Below are positions 1-64,000 of a stretch of DNA of 64,000 nt, in pieces. How positions within the stretch are numbered: the stretch's first letter is position 1; each line of letters begins with the position of its first letter. The translations under genes and the position numbers were made by a program. The DNA comes from Paraphysomonas bandaiensis (Eukaryota; Protista; Chrysophyceae). Below the pieces are notes generated by a model, which did no database searches, was not told where the DNA came from, and saw nothing but the letters and a program-made list of their open reading frames with translations. The stretch covers positions 130,328 to 194,327 of the forward strand of contig CBFFRP010000210.1 in NCBI GenBank assembly GCA_965644295.1, in the 5' to 3' direction.

Positions 1-613
1 TGTATATGTTCTTATTATATATATATATTAATGCTTAAGGCTGGAGAAGTTTACTGGAGAATTCCGGGTTTGATATCCACGCTGATAGACGTGTATTGCC
101 AGATTATCCAGTAATACAGTTGTACTTATGTATTTCATTAGGTACTTATTGTTTATTGAACTGTACTTGGAAGTACGTATACAAGGCTTCAACTACAATG
201 AGAATACTGAATGTATCTTCCCTTATGCATTGATGATGAATCAGTTGTGATCAGGCTGAGCTATTAGTAATGTATATGGATGAAGGTCATTCCTGGAGGC
301 CTTCCTCTGGCCTGGGAATCATATGTATATATTGATTGTTGATAATAAGATGCAATTTCTGTACTCTGGAAGTTGCTTGTAGATAGTATTGTAGTTGTAG
401 TCATATTCATTGTTAGTTATCTATTAGTACCATGGAGGGAGAACCTAAAATGGAGGTTCATGACTCTAGTCTGTCTCATTTAGCTCTGAGAAGGATCAGA
501 GCAATGATTATTGAAGAACAACAGTCGATATCGAGTGCTGATCAGCAGCGCGTCAGAGATATTGGACTCGTTATTGGTTTAGTTGAGCCAGGGTCAGAGA
601 CGCTGGTATCACA
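1..613 (+). mobile_element. Distal part of an LTR (solo or 3' LTR, cut by the window edge) from a sister family of the SET-bearing gypsy element
   Basis: About 36-120 is near-identical to about 53352-53435 (aaggctggagaagtttactggagaattccggg...). ORF 432.. encodes a homologue of the gag N-terminus (RDIGLVIGLVEPGSETLVSQ vs RDIGLAFGLSEIESETLVSQ). Similarity ends at CA 612-613, the equivalent of the LTR end. Confidence 0.8.
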
Positions 614-50017: not shown

Positions 50018-50840
50018 GGTTATTACTTCTGGGGAAGAATATCAGGCGCAATCATGTTCTGGTTATGACTGTGATGTGGCTATTATGTCTTATCATTTCC
50101 GTGTGTTCGAGGACGAACGATTCCCAAAACTGTGTATTGATTGGCCGAGAAGAATTGTGGTAAAAAATACTAAAGAGTTATAGTAATAAGAAGTCGGAAC
50201 AGCCACAATACGCCCAAAATGCACCGAAAAATCACATTATTTTTTCCAATCAAATACTGACTGAAATGCTATGCCAGTATACCATCTAAGCTGTGATTTA
50301 TGCAAATTGTAACAATGGGAGTCTCAATAGACATCTGCAAACCGGTATATCCCCTAGCAAGCAGTGTATGTAACAACTAATTGGCATGTTTAGTTTATCT
50401 GAAATGGACATATTTAAACGATAGAGACTTCATTAACTAATAAAATGTAATTTTAAATAATACGGAGGATAGCAGCTCAATAGCGACCAATATAAATATC
50501 TTACATCGGCTTCCTCAACTGCTTCAATGAAGATAATTAGGGGAAGGAGGAGCCCCTCTTTACCCCCCAAACCCCAAAGGTGCTCTTTCCATGATAATTG
50601 AGATATAGTTGAATTGGAATAATATGGCTCAATCACAGCGTTGAGATCAAGAAATAAAATGACTACTCACTAACTTATCAACACTATATTATTATACTAT
50701 ACTACGACACACATCTTATTACACTTATCTGAATCTCTCGGGCCGGCACGAGCAGAGTTCGTGTACTTGTAGACATGGTTGAAGGAACAACTAATCATAT
50801 AGTAGTAGTCATGGTAGAAGGACTAACTGAAAGGCATATT

Positions 50841-51520
50841 CTAAACAAATGAGGGACGACTTGTGGTGCAATAGTCTCCTGCCCTGCATGCATCACATCT
50901 CGAAGCATCATGTGGTTTCTGTATCTCAGATTTTTCAGATTCAGATTCTTCAGATTCAGGATATACATCAAATACCCACATAATGTATGGGGCTACATAT
51001 CTTTCGCATTTTTGGCATTCCTGATAATACTTTTTCGCAAAGGCATGGGCAGATATCCATATGCGTGAACAAGATGAGCATCTGAACACTCCAAACCCTT
51101 TCTTTCCTTTGAATTCATGACGATACACCTAGTATCCAATCGCACCTTTGAAGGGTTTCACAGCACATACATCTGGCTCCAGTGGATGTTTACTTGCAGA
51201 ATGCTGCTCTAATGCATGTTCAGATTGGAATATTACATCACAGTAATCACATTCAAAGTCATTGCAGCTGTATGCTGCTCCAATGCATGCTGAGATCGGA
51301 ATGTTTTGCAGAAGTAATCACATTCATTCATTAGCATGAACAGCATTCGTATGCTGCTCTAGTGCACGCTCGGATCGGAATATTAGGTTACAGTAATCAC
51401 ATTCTGTGCTGCTTTAGTGCATGCTCGGATCGGAATAATATATCACAGTAATCACATTCAAAGATATAGACATGCACTTCATTTGTGTGTTGCTCTAATG
51501 CATGTTCAGATATGTTGGTC
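50841..51520 (-). pseudogene. C2H2 zinc-finger repeats plus 3CxxC (Zar1/RTP-type) zinc-binding domain, disrupted
   Basis: GFGVFRCSSCSRIWISAHA..QECQKC..KPHDASRCDAC. Upstream CDYC..FRSEHAL..H repeats (cagtaatcacattc, 4 copies) carry frameshifts. Confidence 0.7.
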
Positions 51521-52420: not shown

Positions 52421-53759
52421 CTTTTCAATATAAGAAATCCCTCTTCCAGAGAGCTGTTGTGTGCCTGCTTTTGGATGAGCATTGCACACTTCAATGATGA
52501 AGGAGTACGCGATCCGTTCCGGGTGTGCCAGAGTTTCTTCGCTTTGCGTAATCGTCTCTCCTGTGCATCAATCATTTGGGCTCCCGCTGGAACTAAATTA
52601 AGAAATCTAATATTGAAACTAGTATCATACTATATAACGCTACGAGTACTGTTTGTGCGTCGCCACATACACCAAGGTGCAATCATATAGTCGATGTGAC
52701 CGCTAAACCTGATGACATTTTGATAAAGTTGCTTAAATTGAGTTTATGATGCGTTTTACAATAATTAATGTGGTAGATGTGAAGAGAATACATGTTTTAA
52801 AGGCATATTATTTCTAAATCAAATGTAAAATGGAACGGTTACGATATATACATAATATATGTATACTATTGTACTATGTAATTGAAGTAAAGTTCTATCG
52901 GTAAATTAAAAATACTTGCAATCGATAATCAAGTGAGTTTCTGGCACGCTTACCTGCAATAATAGATGCAGAATCAATTGCACTAGTGTCTATCCACTCC
53001 TGATAGTATAGAAATATATGACGAATAATAATACAAAAACACCACACAACATACCAGATTGAATATGTAATAACCAGCTATCAGGTTATTCTATTCTACA
53101 AGCTCTCTATTGTATATGCTTAAGTTTGTACATACTATCTGTGCAAACATAGATTGAATATTATTATTATTACCATAACTCACACTGAGATATATGATGT
53201 ATTATGACTATGACAATTCATGCTTATTATTGATATTTACATAATCATTCAAAAGACAAAGAGAGACATGATTATCAATAATGAGACATAATGATGATAC
53301 TGATGATGGATGATATATATATATGTTCTTATTATATATATATATTGACTTTAAGGCTGGAGAAGTTTACTGGAGAATTCCGGGTTTGATATCCACGCTG
53401 ATAGATGTGTATTGCCAGATTATCCAGTAATACAGTTATACATTACGTATTTCCTTCAGTGCTTATTGGGGATTGATTGTACTAAGGAGTACGAATACCA
53501 GGCTTCAACTACAAAGAGAATACTGAATGTATCTTCCCTTATACAGTTGTGATGAGTTATTATGATCAACTGTGTTAGACTGATGTGTTTGGTATTGAAT
53601 ATGAATGATGTTCATTCCATTGATCACGGAATCGTAGGTAGACATATTTATATTATTGATAATAAGATGCAATTTCCTTACTCTTGAAATTGCTGGTAGA
53701 TAGCATTGTAGTTGTAGACATATATTTGTTCATTGTGATTTGATTATATTGTTATTATT

Positions 53760-56700
53760 ATGGAGGAGGAGACTCTTGATAGCGCACAAGAGTCTACTAA
53801 ATTCGAGTCAGTGAGAAGGACCCTCAGGCTTATGCTTGGAGGGTTAGACCCTTCCATTGCCAATGCCAGTGAGGATCAAATCCGGGATATAGGCTTGGCA
53901 TTTGGGTTGTCTGAGATCGAATCAGAGACGTTGGTGTCTCAATTTTTTAAGGAAATTTCATCTCTCAATAAACAAAGTGACGACTTTAGAGAGACAGAAA
54001 CTCATGAAGCAGACAGTCAAGCAACGACTGTTCCAGAACTGGTGGATCGTCTTAGTAGTCCGGAGGAGGTACCCTTGTCAGCCCGAAAACCTCTCGCATT
54101 CGGTAAGGACGCTATTCAACCATTGAGGGCTCAGGATGATTTTTGTTCGTTTGATGCAGATGCGACAGGAGATAGTCCATTGCATATGGACCCCTTGCCA
54201 TTCAAGGAACAAAGTAACAAGGAGGCTGAGGCAAAGGAGTGTCATTATACACCCTTACCTCACGCAGGGGATGAGGCACACAATGTGCTACATTCCACCT
54301 CTGGATTGCAAGGTGTATATAACACCAGCAGACCAGACCAACTAGGTAGAGATGCGGATAGGTGTCAAATCTGTCAGCGACTCACAGATCCCAAGCGTCT
54401 CACCGCAGGAGGAATATGTTATTATTGCTCGGAAAATCAATGTATCGATTGTAAGGACCAGGTAAATTCAATGGAAATTCAGGGTGGTCTATGTTATCGA
54501 TGCCGAGTAAGAAGGGGGATACTCAGATCAAAGAGACCCACCACAGACACATTAGAGAAGTGCATAATATTGGGCCATAGAAGATTGCGTCCTCGGCCAG
54601 ACCTAAACGAGGACACATATATGGAGCATTTGTACCTGGATCGTGGGGCTAGAGACCCTATGGACCTAAAGATTTCTCTTAACATCCTGCAACAGTACGC
54701 AGATCGACGGAGGGTACATACCACCAGATGGTCAAGACAGCGATACACCGCTCATATAGCAGAGCCACTGCAGCATTGGGAGCAGCAGATTTACATGGCT
54801 TGTACAGCTACTGAGGTCACTGATCGTTTACAGGACCACTTTTTTGAGCAAATGAAAATAGCAAGAGAGAGTTCTGCGGAAGATATTTCTCAGCTTGCCC
54901 AACTAGTCTTAAATCGAGGAAACGGCTTGCAATTACCATCAAATGTTCGCGAGTGGTTAAGTAGGCTGACAGTTCTTGACAATGTACATGAGTTAGTGGC
55001 TGAAGAGCACATTTACGAAACAGCGGAATTGTGTATGGTGCTGAACCAATACCTTGATATAAGAGACATGGCTGAAACTATGTGGGAGGAGGCCGATAGC
55101 CAACTAATGATGCGCTGCAACCTCCTCAGCAAACAACTCAGTCAGCAAAATAAAAAATTTGGATCTTGGGAAGAGAGGACCGTTGACTCTGACGATGAGT
55201 CATACCACTCCTTCGTCAGCAATGGTAGTCGGGGTTCCTTTGTCAGCAGAGGAAGTCGGTCAGCGGATACCAGATCAAGTACATCCCGAGTGTTGAGTTC
55301 TAGGGGTTCAAGATCGAATTCCCGTATTTATCCAACTGAAGATGGCAGACTGCTAGACGCACAAGCATTCGGGTGTCACCTTCAACAAATTGGAGAGCAA
55401 CACTGGTCACTGCTCTGTAACCAAATGCGATCGTCTAGAGCCATGCGGTTAATGTCTAAAGCATTGCCCAAAGCTACTCCATGGAGAAGAGAAGTCAAGG
55501 AGCCTACTCTCTACATGAAGACTGATGACAAGATGCGTCTAGAGAAAGATCATTCTAATCGATACCCCATTGAAAGAGGACTCCGTTTTGCTGTCCAGAA
55601 GGCACGTCAGGCCAAGATGGGGCTGAAAGATTTGGTCATACAGACAAAGAATGGTTGGTGTTTTAAGGGCGGCTTTAAAGAGGAACTGCAACGGTTGTCT
55701 TTGAATCGTGTGCCAGAGATATGGGATGACCAGGAGGATAGCCAATTAGCCACTGAATATGAATTTTGGATGCGTCGTTGGGTGCATTTCTGCCATTGGG
55801 CTATCCGTAATTATTGTCCCGTACAGACCAATGAACAGCGTGCCAAACAGATTGAGGACTGGGCTGCTCCTGATCTCGCTACGCCTACAGCAGTTATGCA
55901 ACTATATTATGAACTAAAAGAGGTAGTTGAACATAATACGCCGGATCGCCAGACGGCACAGGTGATGGAAGAATCTATGCGCCGAGTGGTAGGAAAAGAG
56001 CCTGTTTGGGGTAAATCGTTGGTTGCAGCGTACGACAATAAGATCACAAAAATTGAAAGGGCGAAGTCGACTGAAAATTGGAGTCTATCATGGGAGGAGG
56101 TAGAATCAATCTGGCGAGAGATTCAGGAAGAATTCCAGCAGGGAACGCTGCTATACATTATACGTCCTGATGTCCAATCTAGTAAACAACCAGACACAAC
56201 TAAGGGTGAGGGAGGCTTACGACGACATCACAAAGTTCATGCCGGCATACGCGAGGAACCCAAACCATCTCTCACACCGATTGAGATTGCGAAGCTTACA
56301 TGTTCACGATGTGGCCTTCGACATAGTATTAACAACGCTCAATGCCGACGCATCACGAATGGGAAATTTGACCCACTTGGATTTGTGTCTGAGACACCAC
56401 GTAACATTGAAAGGAATCGAATATACAATTTTTGGTTGTCCAGATTGAATAAGTATAGCCAACCTTGGTCTCAGTTGCCTACGGCTCAGAAGGAGGAATT
56501 TCAGGCAGCATTTCGGGATTTGACTAGCCGGTGGGATGGAGGGAGTGCTTTGCATACGACATTCATTGGTGGCGAACGGAAGAAATCCAATTCCATAGCA
56601 TCAAGTGTTTCTAGTACACCACAAGTACATTGGGCGGATAGTGATGATGACTCTTCTTTCTCTACACTGGATGACTCTATACCTGCTCACAGTACAGACT

Positions 56701-57830
56701 CACTTTCCGGTTCACGATCTACTAAGTCAAAATCAAAACCCAAACGAAAGGTTCATGCTGCACAAAAAGTTCGATACTTAGTGCACACTGTGACACCTAG
56801 GGATGAATCTCAAGATACATTATCCATGTTTCGTGTTCTATATGATACAGTTGATGAAACTGGTAAACCAGTACAGAGAGTCGGTTGGCACCAGGTGGAT
56901 CATGGCCCTATGGAGTCCTTGATCGACGAAGAGTGTGCAGCCCTCTTGAATCTTAAGCGAGTACGAATCCCAAAGAGAGACCGGTACATTATTCGGGGAA
57001 TAGGTTCACAGGATATCGCTGTGAGTTGGAGAGCTTGTCTTACCTACACTGTTACTGCACAACGGGTCTTACCTGTGGCAGTGTTGCCGGGAGAGGCACC
57101 ACTTTTGAACAATGCAAAAGAACAAGTTCAGTTGAAAGCATGGATACCAATTATCCCGAATTGTTCCATGAATGTAATCTTTGGAGGGCATGCATTACGA
57201 CGTATCAAAATGATTGACTTGTTTGATCATAAACTGCTGTTGTTCCAAACTAATGGTATTCAGTATGCAATGCCTCAATTCAACTGGAATGAGACTGTTA
57301 CGCAAATGGCATCAGCTCAGGACCCTGTGGTACAGAAATGTGTTGCACGCCATCTCCGTGAAAACAAACCTCAACCTCACAAGGCTGCAGTCTGCATATC
57401 GAAACATATCCCACCGCATTCTAAGATGCGGATTCCTGTTCAAGTGGGCAAGGGTGCTCCGTTAGGTGGATGGATACAGACTCAGCCAGAGGTTGCAAGG
57501 ATTAATTCAGGTGATGATGCTAATGAGCCCGTCTTACAATTTGAAGATGCTATTTGTACGGCGAACAGACCTTATATATGGGCTTCTAATCATACCGATG
57601 ATTGGATCCATCTACCGGGTAGACCGCGTTTAGTTGTACGACTTCAACCCATATTATTGGGGATGCAGGTTCATAATCAGGAGACGGTGGAATCTGCTAT
57701 GAAAGGCAGTGTCGAGACGGAGGATACCACTATCATGCCTACTGATGACAAATTCCAGCATTCAGATATTTCTATGTTATCTGAAGAGAATCACGAAAAT
57801 GTCACTAGGCTGGTGTCCTCATCGAAATGA
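53760..57830 (+). CDS. Gag-protease polyprotein (1356 aa)
   Basis: Starts inside the 5' LTR. It has a four-CxxC cluster, a knuckle-like CSRCGLRH..C and a retropepsin-like region (QVDHGPMESLID...IRGIG...VIFGGHAL). Confidence 0.8.
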   Translation: MEEETLDSAQESTKFESVRRTLRLMLGGLDPSIANASEDQIRDIGLAFGLSEIESETLVSQFFKEISSLNKQSDDFRETETHEADSQATTVPELVDRLSSPEEVPLSARKPLAFGKDAIQPLRAQDDFCSFDADATGDSPLHMDPLPFKEQSNKEAEAKECHYTPLPHAGDEAHNVLHSTSGLQGVYNTSRPDQLGRDADRCQICQRLTDPKRLTAGGICYYCSENQCIDCKDQVNSMEIQGGLCYRCRVRRGILRSKRPTTDTLEKCIILGHRRLRPRPDLNEDTYMEHLYLDRGARDPMDLKISLNILQQYADRRRVHTTRWSRQRYTAHIAEPLQHWEQQIYMACTATEVTDRLQDHFFEQMKIARESSAEDISQLAQLVLNRGNGLQLPSNVREWLSRLTVLDNVHELVAEEHIYETAELCMVLNQYLDIRDMAETMWEEADSQLMMRCNLLSKQLSQQNKKFGSWEERTVDSDDESYHSFVSNGSRGSFVSRGSRSADTRSSTSRVLSSRGSRSNSRIYPTEDGRLLDAQAFGCHLQQIGEQHWSLLCNQMRSSRAMRLMSKALPKATPWRREVKEPTLYMKTDDKMRLEKDHSNRYPIERGLRFAVQKARQAKMGLKDLVIQTKNGWCFKGGFKEELQRLSLNRVPEIWDDQEDSQLATEYEFWMRRWVHFCHWAIRNYCPVQTNEQRAKQIEDWAAPDLATPTAVMQLYYELKEVVEHNTPDRQTAQVMEESMRRVVGKEPVWGKSLVAAYDNKITKIERAKSTENWSLSWEEVESIWREIQEEFQQGTLLYIIRPDVQSSKQPDTTKGEGGLRRHHKVHAGIREEPKPSLTPIEIAKLTCSRCGLRHSINNAQCRRITNGKFDPLGFVSETPRNIERNRIYNFWLSRLNKYSQPWSQLPTAQKEEFQAAFRDLTSRWDGGSALHTTFIGGERKKSNSIASSVSSTPQVHWADSDDDSSFSTLDDSIPAHSTDSLSGSRSTKSKSKPKRKVHAAQKVRYLVHTVTPRDESQDTLSMFRVLYDTVDETGKPVQRVGWHQVDHGPMESLIDEECAALLNLKRVRIPKRDRYIIRGIGSQDIAVSWRACLTYTVTAQRVLPVAVLPGEAPLLNNAKEQVQLKAWIPIIPNCSMNVIFGGHALRRIKMIDLFDHKLLLFQTNGIQYAMPQFNWNETVTQMASAQDPVVQKCVARHLRENKPQPHKAAVCISKHIPPHSKMRIPVQVGKGAPLGGWIQTQPEVARINSGDDANEPVLQFEDAICTANRPYIWASNHTDDWIHLPGRPRLVVRLQPILLGMQVHNQETVESAMKGSVETEDTTIMPTDDKFQHSDISMLSEENHENVTRLVSSSK

Positions 57831-60800
57831 GTTGACGGCAAAGAGGTGAATCGGCCACCTCCGGAGCCACCGCCTGTTAACATAGCCGATACGACTTCGG
57901 ATTGTCCACGACCGGAGTCATTCCCTGTGGAATTATGGAATTTAGTGGATTTGTGTCAGCGAAATTCAGTTCAACCACGATTTGACAAGTACACTCCTGA
58001 CCGTCTTCAAGAGTGTATTGAACTGATTTTAACTAAGCTGGATATATATAAGGATGATGAAGCAGTCTCGTTGCAAGGGGAGATTTCTATCGACGCGGAT
58101 ACTATAGCTTCACATCATAATGAACGTGATTATTTTTTGGCTCAAGCTTTGGCCAATATTGATGTTTTCTGTTTTCCTGATCCCGATAACCCTCCACGGA
58201 TTAAGGATTATAAAGTGAGTATTGAAACTACTGATGAAGTTCCGGTTCGGGCGCGACCTCGGAAATATTCTTTATTGCAACAAGCATTTTTAGAGGCTAA
58301 AACTGGTATGATGCTTCGTCAGAAAAAGCTTCAACCCTCAAACAGTGATTGGAGCCATGGTTTAGTTCTGGTTCCTTATCATGACCGTATTCAGAAATTT
58401 TTAGATAAATGGGGAGACACGGCACATTTAGAAATCTTCAAAAAGGTTAACTGGCCTGAAGTGGCCACATTTTTTCGGATGTGTTCAGATGTCCGATCGC
58501 TCAATCAGAAAACTAAGGTAGATATTTTTCCACTTCCCAGGATTGATGACTTGCTAGATAGCATTCCTGTGGGAACTGACCGGTTTTCAGCGGGCGATAT
58601 TGCTGATGCATTTTTCTGTGTGGAGCTTGACGCTGATAGTCGATTTAAAACGGCATTCCGCACTCATAACGCTCATTTACAGTATACGGTGATGTTACAA
58701 GGCTGGGTCAATGCACCTTCACACTTTAGTAGAGTCATTGCCCAGACTTTTGAAGACATGGATCGGTTTCAAGTCTCTGCATACCTGGACGATGTGCTTA
58801 ACCATACTGGGGGTTTTCGTGCACATTTCCTGACACAGCAGTCCATATACGATAGACTTCGAAATCGTCATCTTACATTTAAAATTGAAAAGACTCATAT
58901 TAATTATCGGGAGCTGCGGTTCCTTGGACATATTCTGTCCAGAAACGGCCGATGCCCTGATCCGAAGAAGGTTGAGGCGATTACAAATCTTGCAGACCCA
59001 GAGGACGTTACGGCTGTTCGATGTTTTTTAGGAAGTACTTCATTCTATCGTCAGTATATTCCTCAATACGCAGACGTTGCGTTGCCTCTGTATGACTTGA
59101 CGAAGAAAAATGTCAACGTGAAGAAACTCTGGCGCCCAGAGATACACGGCCATGCCATGGAGAGGCTTAAAGAGGCGCTGCGGAAGGCTCCTGTGCTTCG
59201 TTACATTGATAATTCTAAACCGTTTGTCATTCACCTGGATGCTTCCAAGACAAAGCGTGGTATCGGTGGGGTTCTCATGCAGCATGATGACGCAGGGCAG
59301 CTCCATCCGGTGGAATATTTCAGTCGTAAGTTAACTCCTGCTGAACGAAATTACTCGGCCACGGATTTGGAATGTAAGGCCCTCAGGGATGTTATTCTCC
59401 ATTGGCATATTTATCTGAGTAGTGGTCGTAAATTTGAAGTCCACTCTGACCACAATTGCCTGAAATATATGGTCCATTCAGTGACTGCAACACTTAATCC
59501 ACGATTGCTGGGATACCTCATGGATCTTCAATCATATCGTTTTGCTTTACATTACAAAAAAGGGGTGGAAAATGTAGTTGCTGATATGTTAAGTCGCCTT
59601 TGGCAAATAGGGGATGTACCGCCAGCTACTAGGGAGGAGCTCTCCGATCATCTCGGGCCGGTGGTTGATAATGAGGATCCAGACCTCATCCGATCATGGG
59701 GGGCTGCAAAACGACAGTTGAGTAAATTGAAACGCCAAGCGGTTGTGGAGGCGCAAACTATTAAGAAAACTCATACTTGCTCTAGCAAATTTGAGGTTCA
59801 AATCTGTAATTGTGATGCGCTGGATTTGGATTTGTTGTCTTCTTTGCCTGATGTCAAGGAAGGGGGAGTATTAGGGGAAAGTTCAGAATTAGAAAATTCT
59901 GCAGTTAGATTTAAAGTTGCTGGCTCTACATTAAAAAGAAGGAAGCAGCTTTGTATCGATGTAGAACAATATAGTTGCCAAGTCGAGAATCTACTTAAAG
60001 AATTGAATATCACGGAAGTTCAGGAAACTGGTGAGTCAAGGATGAAATTCAGCAATTCGGGACAGAATATACAACATGCAACTGCACACACGAACCGAAC
60101 TAGCTTTCATCCATCTCGAACAAACTATATGGATAATCCAGATGAGTCAGAAGATATGAAGTTAATTCGAGAACGACGAATTTCTGGTTACAATCAATGT
60201 ACTATTCTTCCATCGACAAAGCTAAGAGCAGGATGGGGACTTTTTGCCACCAAACAGATCTGTCCAAATGTTGAGATTTGTGATTATGTGGGTCCGGTTG
60301 TATCTGAAGGAGTGGATCAATTAAGCTCCAATTATGGGATGCAGATGATTGCTGGAGCACATCGTAAGATTGTTATTGATGGATGGGAACCTGGTTCAAG
60401 CTTAGGTCGATATGCGAATGATGGGATATCCAAACAATTGATTAATGCGAAATTGATATGGAAAAAATCTAAAGGAGTTTTGATGGCTCTTAGAGAGATC
60501 TTGCCTGGGGATGAAATATTTTTTGACTATGGTAAAGAATTTTGGAGTACTAGAAGTGATCAACTTAGTCCAGAAGATAATCAAATTCTGAATTTAGATG
60601 GATCTCGACGGAAGACTACCGTGTCTTTTAAAGATGAATTTGAGTTAATTGTGTACGATCAAAAACGGAAAGTTCAGGAGAAACTATATTCCAAAATCTT
60701 TAAGTACAGCGATGAAGAAAATTCCAGAATACAGGAACTTGTTGAGATGGAGGAACGAAATACTAGGAATTTCGAGAGAACTCTCCGATATCTAGAAACC

Positions 60801-62411
60801 GACGCTTTGGAGAAGTACTCTTATGAGAACCTAGTACAATGCCAATCACTTGCTGACGAATTGCAATATCTGGTAGGCAGAAAGTATATTGATGACGATA
60901 ATTTCCAAAAATATGAGATTGCTTCAATACATTATGATGAAATGCATAAGTTAGTGGTTGGTCATAGGAGGCCTTTGTCAGGGAAATTGGATAGATATGA
61001 TACTCACCCATTCGCCGTATGTGGAAAATCTGGATTATGGGAGTTATCAGATCAATATTTATTAGATCATCCGGAAGAAGATCCGGAGATTAAGTGGCCT
61101 TCGAGTAGAGAGAGTATGTTTCAGATCCAAGAAAATGATACTCAACTTGGATTGATTATATCACAGTTATCAAATTTTGAAACTGGCCATGAGTTAGAAG
61201 TGGATGGTCATGTTTACAAGTTACATGAGAATGCAGATGAACCATCGCACAAGACACTATTGAGAAAACATGTTCAGAAAAACAAGGGATCAATAGATTG
61301 GCAAATTATGGTCCCTCAGGTGTTACGTTTTCAACTAATGAAGTATTTCCATGAAGGATATACGCATCCAGGAACACAACGAATGCTTGAAACTTTGAAA
61401 TTGAGATATTTTTGGCCGTCAATACGCAAGGATGTACAGAAACATGTGGAGGAATGTATACCTTGTAAATTACGTAAGACCTATCAAACGCGACCAAAGA
61501 TTCCAATAATGAAATACCCTGATGCAAAATTTCCTTTGTCACGAATACATATTGATTTAACAGGAAGATTGGTGAAAACCAAAAGTGGTTTCAGTTATAT
61601 TCTAGTGGTAAAGGATTTCCTTACTAAATTTGTTTGGCTTATGCCTCTTAAGAACAAGACGCCTTTGGAAGTGGCTAATGCTTTGATTACTCATGTGTTT
61701 TGTCCATTTGGGTTACCAGAATTACTGGTGAGTGATAAAGGCACAGAGTTTGTCAATAAACTGACCAAAGCAATATCCAAGTTATTCAAGTATAGAAGGA
61801 TTAACACTACTCCTTATACTCCAAGGAGCCAGGGTTTAGTTGAGAATCACAACAAGACGTTGAAGGATCAGTTGTACCATTTTGTAGGTGTATTACAGGA
61901 TGACTGGGATACATTTTTGCCTACAGTACAATTGATGTATAATACTACAGTGTCCTCGAGCACAAGTTTTACTCCATATTATATGATGTTCGGTAGAGAA
62001 TGCCGTTTACCATCTATAGAGTTTACATTGTCCTCGAAACTTTCCGAGCTTCGATTACAACCTGGAACTATTGAAGCTGAATGGATAGATAAATTGTTGA
62101 TTTCTTTGGAACAAGCTTGGAATTATGCAACGAAGAAGGCTCAAAAGAATCATCTTCGACATAATATAGTATCTAGGCGACCTCGAGAGTTCAAAGAATA
62201 TAATGCTGGTGACTTATTCTTCAGAATTCGACGTCCAATTAATGTGTTTAAATCGGCTGATGATGAGGAATTGTATAAAATCAATGCCAAATTACAAGCT
62301 AGATTTGAAGGACCTTATAAAGTTATTCGGCGACTAAGTCCAATACTTTATGATGCTGAAATTGAAGGAAAAGAGGTTCGAATAAATGCTACTAATATGA
62401 AGCCATTTTAG
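57831..62411 (+). CDS. Pol: RT, RNase H, SET domain, integrase (same frame as gag, after one UGA)
   Basis: Motifs FPLPRIDD, YLDD, LDAS, SDH, ADMLSR, SET motifs, H-x4-H..CIPC, integrase D,D,E (IHID/SDKG/VE) and GPY. Confidence 0.93.
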   Translation, partial: VDGKEVNRPPPEPPPVNIADTTSDCPRPESFPVELWNLVDLCQRNSVQPRFDKYTPDRLQECIELILTKLDIYKDDEAVSLQGEISIDADTIASHHNERDYFLAQALANIDVFCFPDPDNPPRIKDYKVSIETTDEVPVRARPRKYSLLQQAFLEAKTGMMLRQKKLQPSNSDWSHGLVLVPYHDRIQKFLDKWGDTAHLEIFKKVNWPEVATFFRMCSDVRSLNQKTKVDIFPLPRIDDLLDSIPVGTDRFSAGDIADAFFCVELDADSRFKTAFRTHNAHLQYTVMLQGWVNAPSHFSRVIAQTFEDMDRFQVSAYLDDVLNHTGGFRAHFLTQQSIYDRLRNRHLTFKIEKTHINYRELRFLGHILSRNGRCPDPKKVEAITNLADPEDVTAVRCFLGSTSFYRQYIPQYADVALPLYDLTKKNVNVKKLWRPEIHGHAMERLKEALRKAPVLRYIDNSKPFVIHLDASKTKRGIGGVLMQHDDAGQLHPVEYFSRKLTPAERNYSATDLECKALRDVILHWHIYLSSGRKFEVHSDHNCLKYMVHSVTATLNPRLLGYLMDLQSYRFALHYKKGVENVVADMLSRLWQIGDVPPATREELSDHLGPVVDNEDPDLIRSWGAAKRQLSKLKRQAVVEAQTIKKTHTCSSKFEVQICNCDALDLDLLSSLPDVKEGGVLGESSELENSAVRFKVAGSTLKRRKQLCIDVEQYSCQVENLLKELNITEVQETGESRMKFSNSGQNIQHATAHTNRTSFHPSRTNYMDNPDESEDMKLIRERRISGYNQCTILPSTKLRAGWGLFATKQICPNVEICDYVGPVVSEGVDQLSSNYGMQMIAGAHRKIVIDGWEPGSSLGRYANDGISKQLINAKLIWKKSKGVLMALREILPGDEIFFDYGKEFWSTRSDQLSPEDNQILNLDGSRRKTTVSFKDEFELIVYDQKRKVQEKLYSKIFKYSDEENSRIQELVEMEERNTRNFERTLRYLETDALEKYSYENLVQCQSLADELQYLVGRKYIDDDNFQKYEIASIHYDEMHKLVVGHRRPLSGKLDRYDTHPFAVCGKSGLWELSDQYLLDHPEEDPEIKWPSSRESMFQIQENDTQLGLIISQLSNFETGHELEVDGHVYKLHENADEPSHKTLLRKHVQKNKGSIDWQIMVPQVLRFQLMKYFHEGYTHPGTQRMLETLKLRYFWPSIRKDVQKHVEECIPCKLRKTYQTRPKIPIMKYPDAKFPLSRIHIDLTGRLVKTKSGFSYILVVKDFLTKFVWLMPLKNKTPLEVANALITHVFCPFGLPELLVSDKGTEFVNKLTKAISKLFKYRRINTTPYTPRSQGLVENHNKTLKDQLYHFVGVLQDDWDTFLPTVQLMYNTTVSSSTSFTPYYMMFGRECRLPSIEFTLSSKLSELRLQPGTIEAEWIDKLLISLEQAWNYATKKAQKNHLRHNIVSRRPREFKEYNAGDLFFRIRRPINVFKSADDEELYKINAKLQARFEGPYKVIRRLSPILYDAEIEGKEVRINATNMKPF
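60198..60545 (+). other. SET lysine-methyltransferase domain within Pol
   Basis: AGWGLFATKQI, ICDYVG, IDG, LGRYAND, NAK and ALREILPGDEIFFDYG occur in canonical order and spacing. Confidence 0.88.
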
Positions 62412-63686
62412 GTTCGCAGTGAACTTCGTTCCGCATACTGGCGTATGCGACTGCTGGAGGGGGTAGTGTAATAACCAGCTATCAGGTTATTCTATTCTAC
62501 AAGCTCTCTATTGTATATGCTTAAGTTTGTACATACTATCTGTGCAAACATAGATTGAATATTATTATTATTACCATAACTCACACTGAGATATATGATG
62601 TATTATGACTATGACAATTCATGCTTATTATTGATATTTACATAATCATTCAAAAGACAAAGAGAGACATGATTATCAATAATGAGACATAATGATGATA
62701 CTGATGATGGATGATATATATATATGTTCTTATTATATATATATATTGACTTTAAGGCTGGAGAAGTTTACTGGAGAATTCCGGGTTTGATATCCACGCT
62801 GATAGATGTGTATTGCCAGATTATCCAGTAATACAGTTATACATTACGTATTTCCTTCAGTGCTTATTGGGGATTGATTGTACTAAGGAGTACGAATACC
62901 AGGCTTCAACTACAAAGAGAATACTGAATGTATCTTCCCTTATACAGTTGTGATGAGTTATTATGATCAACTGTGTTAGACTGATGTGTTTGGTATTGAA
63001 TATGAATGATGTTCATTCCATTGATCACGGAATCGTAGGTAGACATATTTATATTATTGATAATAAGATGCAATTTCCTTACTCTTGAAATTGCTGGTAG
63101 ATAGCATTGTAGTTGTAGACATATATTTGTTCATTGTGATTTGATTATATTGTTATTATTATGGAGGAGGAGACTCTTGATAGCGCACAAGAGTCTACTA
63201 AATTCGAGTCAGTGAGAAGGACCCTCAGGCTTATGCTTGGAGGGTTAGACCCTTCCATTGCCAATGCCAGTGAGGATCAAATCCGGGATATAGGCTTGGC
63301 ATTTGGGTTGTCTGAGATCGAATCAGAGACGTTGGTGTCTCAAATACTATCGTCTGAGTCTATATCAACACAATAAGATAGTATTTCCGCAAAAACATGC
63401 GGAGACATTTGTTATTGGTTATATATACGTACGCTTTCCACAAAGAATCTCTCACATCTAAGTATGAGGTTAATATAACTGCACAAATGAAAAAAATACG
63501 GAAGGGGGGGGGTCGATTCTTACACCCCAAAACCCAAAGGGACTCTTTCCTTAATTATCTAGTTATAGTTGAATTGGAATAATTTGGGTATTATCTGCCA
63601 GAGAGCTATATGGCTCAATCACAGCGTTGAGGTCAAGAGGCAAAATGACGAGTCACTAGCAAATCAATTCTTTATTATTATATATA

Positions 63687-64000
63687 TTATCCTATGATAC
63701 ATGTTGTACACATATCTGAAGGCCCGGCAACACGAGCAGGGGTTCGTGTATTCGTAGCTATGGTGGAAGGAGCAGCTGGTCGTGTATTCGTAGCTATGGT
63801 GGAAGGAGCAGCTGGTCGTGTATTCGTAGCTATGGTGGAAGGGACAGCTGGTTGTGTATTCGTAGTTATGGGGGAAGGCATACTATCAACATATGAGGCG
63901 TCGGTGCAGTAGTGTCCTGCCCTGGATGCATCACATCTCGAAGCATCATGTGGTTTCTTCAACTCAGATTCTTCAGAGTCAGATCCTTCAGATTCAGGTT
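63687..64000 (-). CDS. 3' end of a paralogous 3CxxC zinc-finger gene with a 33-bp tandem-repeat tail
   Basis: KPHDASRCDA shared with 50841..51128. PAAPSTIATNT repeats at about 63735-63870. The flank 63515-63650 resembles 50550-50665. Confidence 0.65.
   Translation of the reverse strand, partial: PESEGSDSEESELKKPHDASRCDASRAGHYCTDASYVDSMPSPITTNTQPAVPSTIATNTRPAAPSTIATNTRPAAPSTIATNTRTPARVAGPSDMCTTCIIG

Follow-up and report, generated by a model that had tools for sequence, protein, structure and literature searches.

The window analysed here is a stretch of 64,000 nucleotides (nt) from the chrysophyte Paraphysomonas bandaiensis (contig CBFFRP010000210.1, positions 130,328 to 194,327; assembly GCA_965644295.1). 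It contains an intact, recently active long terminal repeat (LTR) retrotransposon of Ty3/Gypsy type, and the Pol polyprotein of this element carries a SET domain, a protein-lysine methyltransferase fold, between RNase H and integrase. All features lie on the forward strand and are given in window coordinates. The Pol open reading frame (ORF; 57846-62411) encodes 1521 amino acids (aa), and its frame is open from 57831 (1526 aa). Pfam places RVT_1 at aa 210-364, RNase H at aa 434-564, SET at aa 796-896, Integrase_H2C2 at aa 1156-1212 and rve at aa 1230-1326. Apart from the SET domain this is the order of a Ty3/Gypsy Pol, with reverse transcriptase (RT) and RNase H (aa 210-564, 58473-59537; RVT_1 E-value 1.4e-18, RT_RNaseH 1e-27) followed by an integrase with an H2C2 zinc finger and a DDE catalytic core (61311-61823; Integrase_H2C2 8.5e-17, rve 8.4e-9). 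About 590 aa separate RNase H from the zinc finger without any stop or frameshift; the original prediction, made from this sequence, had put the in-frame insert at about 570 aa. The interval consists of a poorly conserved linker without a Pfam family (linker 1, 59538-60158), the SET-fold domain (aa 772-919, 60159-60602), a second, disordered linker (linker 2, aa 921-954, 60606-60707) and a further folded region, here called the post-SET module (60711-61310).

The SET domain is genuine. It matches PF00856 over model positions 1-105 of 105 with an E-value of 3.5e-7 and 31.0 bits, above the gathering cut-off of 22.4, and the Pfam envelope (aa 796-896) corresponds to 60231-60533. The original prediction had located a SET domain at 60198-60545 (aa 785-900) in a Gypsy Pol, between RNase H and integrase, and had proposed profile and structure searches as a check; the position proved correct and both searches agree with the assignment. 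Modelled with AlphaFold from a 52-row alignment, Pol aa 770-1160 give a mean predicted local distance difference test score (pLDDT) of 85.9 and a predicted template modelling score (pTM) of 0.45. The SET part is mostly at pLDDT 83-97, with one block of ten residues at 70. Foldseek searches with the model returned 361 PDB chains at E≤0.001, headed by MLL4, SET8, G9a, MLL1 and PRDM9 (E about 2e-7, probability 1.0). When PDB was searched by sequence only, the SET region matched EZH2 (1.6e-5) and EHMT2, and all such matches were histone methyltransferases. SET domains of giant viruses (Medusavirus, Tetraselmis virus, Bodo saltans virus and a phaeovirus) are about as similar as cellular ones, with E-values of 6e-8 to 1e-6 against the model of this domain. 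No substrate can be read from these matches because no SET subfamily stands out.

The residues that hold the cofactor and line the lysine channel are kept. The GxG cofactor motif is present as AGWG (aa 795-798) and the ELxF/YDY motif as EIFFDYG (aa 890-896), which aligns with ELFFDY of EZH2, while RYAND (aa 855-859) aligns with RFANH; all three motifs had been quoted in the original prediction. Conservation was counted in an alignment of 44-49 relatives. The catalytic tyrosine, Tyr895 (60528-60530), is conserved in all 48 sequences that could be compared, and nearly as constant are G798 (43/44), Y814 (43/45), E890 (48/49), G896 (46/48) and W900 (45/48), with G796 (37/44) and N858 (39/48) somewhat more variable. 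In RYAND, Asn858 is retained and the canonical His is replaced by Asp859. An Asp is found at this position in 47 of 49 relatives, so the Asn-Asp pair is a mark of the clade and not a lesion of the window copy. In DIM-5, G9a and SET8 the number of methyl groups added is controlled by the residue at the second place ahead of the catalytic Tyr, where anything other than Tyr is compatible with multiple methylation. The window element has Phe there and most relatives have an aliphatic residue; by analogy, the Phe would also be compatible with multiple methylation. As the original prediction had noted, the Pol sequence contains no Cys cluster on either side of the SET domain.

What the original prediction did not include was the clade-wide change from Asn-His to Asn-Asp and the post-SET module. 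The SET domain is always paired with this second conserved and confidently folded module, which abuts the integrase zinc finger. After linker 2, which has a pLDDT below 50 (model residues 152-185), about 200 residues are well conserved, and the 20 cluster representatives that align share an invariant Gly, Asp, Gly, Gly, Trp and Pro. Folded alone, the region reaches a pLDDT of 90 and is predicted to form a long helix, a five-strand SH3-like beta-barrel (approximately 60843-61085), a pair of helices and a small sheet that continues into the zinc finger. A Foldseek search of the post-SET model against PDB gave nothing at E≤0.001. A wide VIA structure search gave CAP-Gly as the best match of the barrel (Z 6.0), followed by Tudor (4.8) and the MRG15 chromo barrel (4.5), values within the chance range for small barrels, and a feature search of the ESM Atlas scored 0.79, below the useful level. 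Every full-length match to the module in the genome lies inside a SET-bearing element. One metagenome relative, P0035, is a candidate for a module without SET, on a contig that begins 80 nt before the gene. SET and the post-SET module behave as one cassette on the N-terminal side of the integrase.

The element that carries this cassette is complete. Its LTRs (53066-53941 and 62467-63342) have TG..CA ends and are identical base for base over their 876 nt, with a perfect match spanning 877 nt, and directly outside them stands the target-site duplication AATA (53062-53065 and 63343-63346). The identical LTRs and the duplication had both been recognised in the original prediction; at 876 nt the LTR is not short. 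A purine-rich tract, GGAGGGGGTAG (62456-62466), adjoins the 3' LTR and resembles a polypurine tract, a function that is suggested by its sequence and place. Pol is preceded in the same frame by ORF1 (53760-57830, 1356 aa), which presumably encodes Gag and a protease-like region. No Pfam family, including Gag and zinc-knuckle families, was found above cut-off in ORF1. The one protease-like signal of the element is a weak match to Asp_protease (E 0.035, below cut-off) at about aa 1045-1087 (approximately 56892-57020), where LIDEEC occupies the place of the expected D(S/T)G. A single TGA (57828-57830) separates ORF1 from Pol, and five sense codons stand before the first listed Pol start, an arrangement that suggests production of Pol by read-through of the in-frame stop codon. 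The ATG of ORF1 (53760) lies inside the 5' LTR, and codons 1-61 recur in the 3' LTR (53760-53941 and 63161-63342). Coding sequence also follows directly after the 5' LTR, at the location where a primer-binding site is expected. A Pfam search of Pol gave no chromodomain match, and the C-terminus showed only weak matches to SH3_Tf2-1 and Integrase_p58_C.

Further copies were sought in the whole assembly (62.6 Mb, 669 contigs), with copy counts taken from protein searches; a DNA search with the element against its own genome, in which very common words were skipped, mostly gave LTR pieces and partial copies. At least nine genomic places encode a SET region 95-100% identical to that in the window, eight of them in a fully open Pol frame. 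Six full-length copies, the one in the window included, have different flanks and each a perfect duplication of 4 bp (AATA, CAAA, AGTC, CTAG, TTTT and ATAT), and three further copies are 100% identical to the window across 3.5 kb. The identical LTRs, the six insertions with duplicated targets and the identical copies show that transposition through the integrase reaction has been very recent, with the SET cassette aboard.

The original prediction named restriction to a single copy and neutral evolution as findings that would speak against it, and neither is the case. Besides the nine places mentioned above, a second family in the same genome has the same order of RT, RNase H, SET and integrase, with a SET domain 36-37% identical to that of the window family. 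Its SET domain scores 44-51 bits against PF00856, more than the one in the window, and also matches the PRDM2_PR model. When the SET region was used in a word-indexed homology search, a single cluster came up, consisting of a near-identical Pol fragment. More distant relatives were reached by exhaustive HMMER searching: against 1.84 billion cluster representatives, a profile of SET and the following region gave 33 proteins at E≤1e-30. The long ones among them have the order RT-RNase H-SET-integrase, and shorter contigs have SET-integrase. Ten of these clusters were looked up and trace to JGI/IMG, ENA and Logan assemblies, labelled only as 'hypothetical protein' or 'exonuclease III'; none of the ten has an NCBI or UniRef record.

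The two families in the genome differ by different amounts along Pol. Amino acid identity between them is 46% in RT-RNase H and 48% in integrase, 37% in both SET and the post-SET region, and 23% and 30% in linkers 1 and 2, respectively. Judged from these comparisons, selection on SET and the post-SET module is visible in identities above those of the linkers, and over deeply diverged lineages of the element the SET domain is about as well conserved as the core enzymes are. Within the window family, a comparison with L009, based on few substitutions, gave a ratio of nonsynonymous to synonymous substitution (dN/dS) that was lowest in RT-RNase H (0.06), higher in SET (0.27) and highest in linker 1 (0.40). 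In deep comparisons dN/dS for SET was about 0.2, at saturated dS.

Separate maximum-likelihood trees of SET, the post-SET module and integrase have all their well-supported splits in common, among them L022 with L024, P0007 with P0009, and the division into two major groups. In a tree of 45 SET rows, a single clade (support 90/97) unites all 13 SETs known to come from LTR elements; its other 12 rows are short pieces whose context is not known. This pattern fits one old capture followed by vertical descent with the element, where the domain would have been kept by selection.

The same SET subtype also occurs in other settings. A long interspersed nuclear element (LINE) in the same genome has SET, an Exo_endo_phos endonuclease and RT in one open frame (L040:2808-8357 and the frame upstream; C146:362000-371999; also C143 and C477). 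This SET has the Asn-Asp-Pro and YGxEYW signature in common with the one in the Gypsy element, and it branches outside the LTR clade. The metagenome relatives P0010 (L028:4613-12262), P0007 and P0021 have the same SET-integrase cassette together with an Exo_endo_phos (APE-type) endonuclease upstream of RT. Their Pol, a protein of 2500 aa, thus unites a DDE integrase with an endonuclease of the kind found in LINEs; these contigs end before any 3' LTR, and the element type is provisional. Two other metagenome sequences, P0040 and P0049, are large, cellular-looking proteins in which this SET subtype is joined to a PRMT5 arginine methyltransferase, and P0040 also has a DOT1 domain, so that a single chain holds two or three families of methyltransferase.

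Near-identical copies of the Pol gene (83-94% of sampled words) are present in 15 public runs belonging to many different studies, among them metagenomes of marine, seawater and hydrocarbon-enrichment origin as well as several runs whose label is that of a single organism. Assembled contigs from polyA metatranscriptomes match the window at 99-100% identity (0-3 differences) in 60962-61472, 61638-61954 and 62099-62346. These contigs from RNA libraries are suggestive of expression of the element and not a proof of it. Run X13, of uncertain type, covers the whole of Pol without a joint, and there is therefore no sign of the cassette being spliced out.

The surroundings of the element are also repetitive. 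The flanks at 50517-50960 and 63477-63998, about 13 kb apart, are 74-91% alike and contain a 36-nt tandem repeat (array at 63744-63878); the element seems to lie inside a repeated host or repeat-family region. At the left edge of the window (1-406) and upstream of it (contig positions 126331-130733) there are LTR-like sequences in a tandem-like order, with 75-87% identity to the LTR of the element, which indicate older related elements nearby. The host genome has at least seven silicon-transporter loci, and a search of it gave no match to the light-harvesting chlorophyll-binding family or PsbO, both of which would be numerous in an ordinary photosynthetic diatom. By gene content the host looks like a silicifying but non-photosynthetic marine protist and not like an ordinary diatom.

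Full-text literature searches found no paper describing the order RT-RNase H-SET-integrase, or SET in the Pol of an LTR retrotransposon, in line with the original prediction, which knew of no characterised case in gypsy Pol. The nearest published statement is that of Grau-Bove et al. (10.1101/2021.11.30.470311), who count SET methyltransferases within a set of 823 gene models in which chromatin and transposon domains are joined. In the part of their table considered here, the SET rows are SETMAR, LINE, Copia or DNA-transposon models, and none of these rows has the order RT-RNase H-SET-integrase. SETMAR and the models in that part of the study resemble the Pol described here in joining SET and a transposon-derived domain in one protein, although SETMAR is a domesticated host gene and not a mobile element.

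Other mobile elements with chromatin-related or epigenetic modules offer closer parallels in some respects. The chromoviruses of the Ty3/Gypsy group, such as MAGGY and Tf1, also have a chromatin-related module fused to integrase and inherited vertically within a clade. Their chromodomain is a reader at the C-terminus of integrase, whereas the window element has the fold of a writer enzyme, with a barrel, on the N-terminal side. Retrotransposons with cytosine DNA methyltransferases are known from dinoflagellates and charophytes (de Mendoza et al. 2018, PMC5890265), and arthropod Copia elements with a methyl-CpG binding domain (MBD) have been described (PMC6673714). In both cases a captured epigenetic component of the host is kept under selection, as here, but those proteins act on or read DNA methylation, while the SET domain has a protein-lysine methyltransferase fold, a different host lineage and a different position in Pol. 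Minimal SET cores without pre- and post-SET zinc clusters also occur in other genetic parasites, namely as vSET of Paramecium bursaria chlorella virus 1 and in giant viruses. The viral proteins are free-standing, in contrast to the window SET, which is an internal domain of a polyprotein with a companion module and the Asn-Asp signature. SET7/9, SET8 (KMT5A), PRDM9 and the MLL-family SETs differ from it by low sequence identity and by Asn-His in place of Asn-Asp, and no subfamily can be assigned. With no description of the layout found in the literature searches, and with the chromodomain, DNA methyltransferases and MBD as functional precedents, the element is rated as a known type carrying a new class of accessory enzyme.

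The structural part of the original prediction has held: the Pol of a young and intact element of Gypsy type does contain a real SET domain. Its functional part, in which the enzyme would mark chromatin at new insertions or methylate proteins of the element, is a matter of interpretation. The reading we prefer is that Pol carries a vertically inherited cassette of SET, linker, and helix with SH3-like barrel, and that the SET domain, made as part of Pol, would be an active methyltransferase that transfers methyl groups from S-adenosylmethionine (SAM) to lysine. It would travel with the integrase into the nucleus, probably as an N-terminal extension of it, where its targets, at the integration site or close to it, would be the histone tails of nucleosomes or other proteins of chromatin. 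Integration might thereby be coupled to the writing or recognition of a chromatin mark, and the SET domain would be a 'writer' counterpart of the chromovirus chromodomain. We consider the chances of this reading, enzymatic part included, to be about even. It is favoured by the conserved catalytic signature, the visible selection, the agreement of the domain trees, the recent activity of the element and the matching contigs from RNA libraries, and by the position of the post-SET module, which lies directly against the integrase and is never found at full length without SET in the genome. Several points weigh against it. SAM binding and catalysis are predictions from sequence and model, and in the NHS motif of SET the canonical Asn-His has given way to Asn-Asp. 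How the SET and post-SET modules are oriented to each other is unreliable in the model, as its pTM indicates, and a physical link between SET and integrase after processing of the polyprotein is a guess. The SET codons lie outside the coverage of the RNA contigs. The substrate is ambiguous as well, since the closest structures methylate H3K4, H4K20, H3K9 and non-histone proteins alike.

The replacement of Asn-His by Asn-Asp throughout the clade would also suit a domain that does not transfer methyl groups at all. SET, together with the barrel, might bind a histone tail as a pseudo-substrate and, as a chromatin tether, steer the integrase towards a given chromatin state in the manner of the chromovirus chromodomain, a role for which the place of the cassette directly N-terminal to integrase would be appropriate and to which the fold class of the barrel, common to Tudor, chromo-barrel and CAP-Gly binding modules, also points. 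PRDM proteins include catalytically inactive SET/PR domains, and relatives of the window SET match the PRDM2_PR model. We regard such a tether as rather unlikely. An active methyltransferase with a substrate outside chromatin has a similarly low probability in our view. The target would then be Gag, RT or integrase of the element itself, or a silencing or restriction factor of the host, and methylation would take place in the particle or the cytoplasm. The SET domain arises as part of a polyprotein which assembles together with Gag, and its best structural match, SET7/9, has many non-histone targets (PDB entries with TAF10, ER and DNMT1 peptides). The LINE described above has the same Asn-Asp subtype ahead of its endonuclease and no integrase, a case that a role tied to integrase leaves unexplained. 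On the other hand, the PDB matches by sequence are all histone methyltransferases, and the fixed place beside integrase, with a dedicated module next to it, points to a role in the nucleus that is tied to integration. That the domain is a roleless and decaying passenger, either a recently captured host exon or a chimera of assembly or gene model, is hardly credible, even though many published gene models of 'SET plus transposon domain' in the part of Grau-Bove et al. (10.1101/2021.11.30.470311) considered here look chimeric. The copy, conservation and tree data contradict it, as they do an accident of a single copy: the frame is continuous in at least eight copies, six insertions are independent, the layout recurs in metagenome contigs of several origins and in a family with no more than 37% identity, the domain trees are congruent and the catalytic residues conserved.

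A bolder version of the preferred reading is that a clade of LTR elements in marine protists encodes its own histone-lysine methyltransferase, coupled to integrase by an adaptor domain, which would mark insertions at integration and so allow the element to escape silencing or to choose and remember a chromatin niche. It would be the first writer of histone marks encoded by a retroelement, and LINEs would have gained this SET subtype through a parallel acquisition. We put this forward tentatively, as possible but less likely than not.

Transposons are usually viewed as targets of chromatin silencing by the host, and a few are known that carry readers, such as the chromodomain and MBD, or DNA methyltransferases. 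Should the SET domain prove active, retrotransposons can also bring along a writer of marks on protein lysines, probably those of histones, and it would be the element, not the host, that determines some of the local chromatin state where it has recently inserted. The question is testable because this young family has several intact copies and occurs both in cultures and in ocean samples. It also provides a new class of accessory domain to look for in the annotation of protist transposons.

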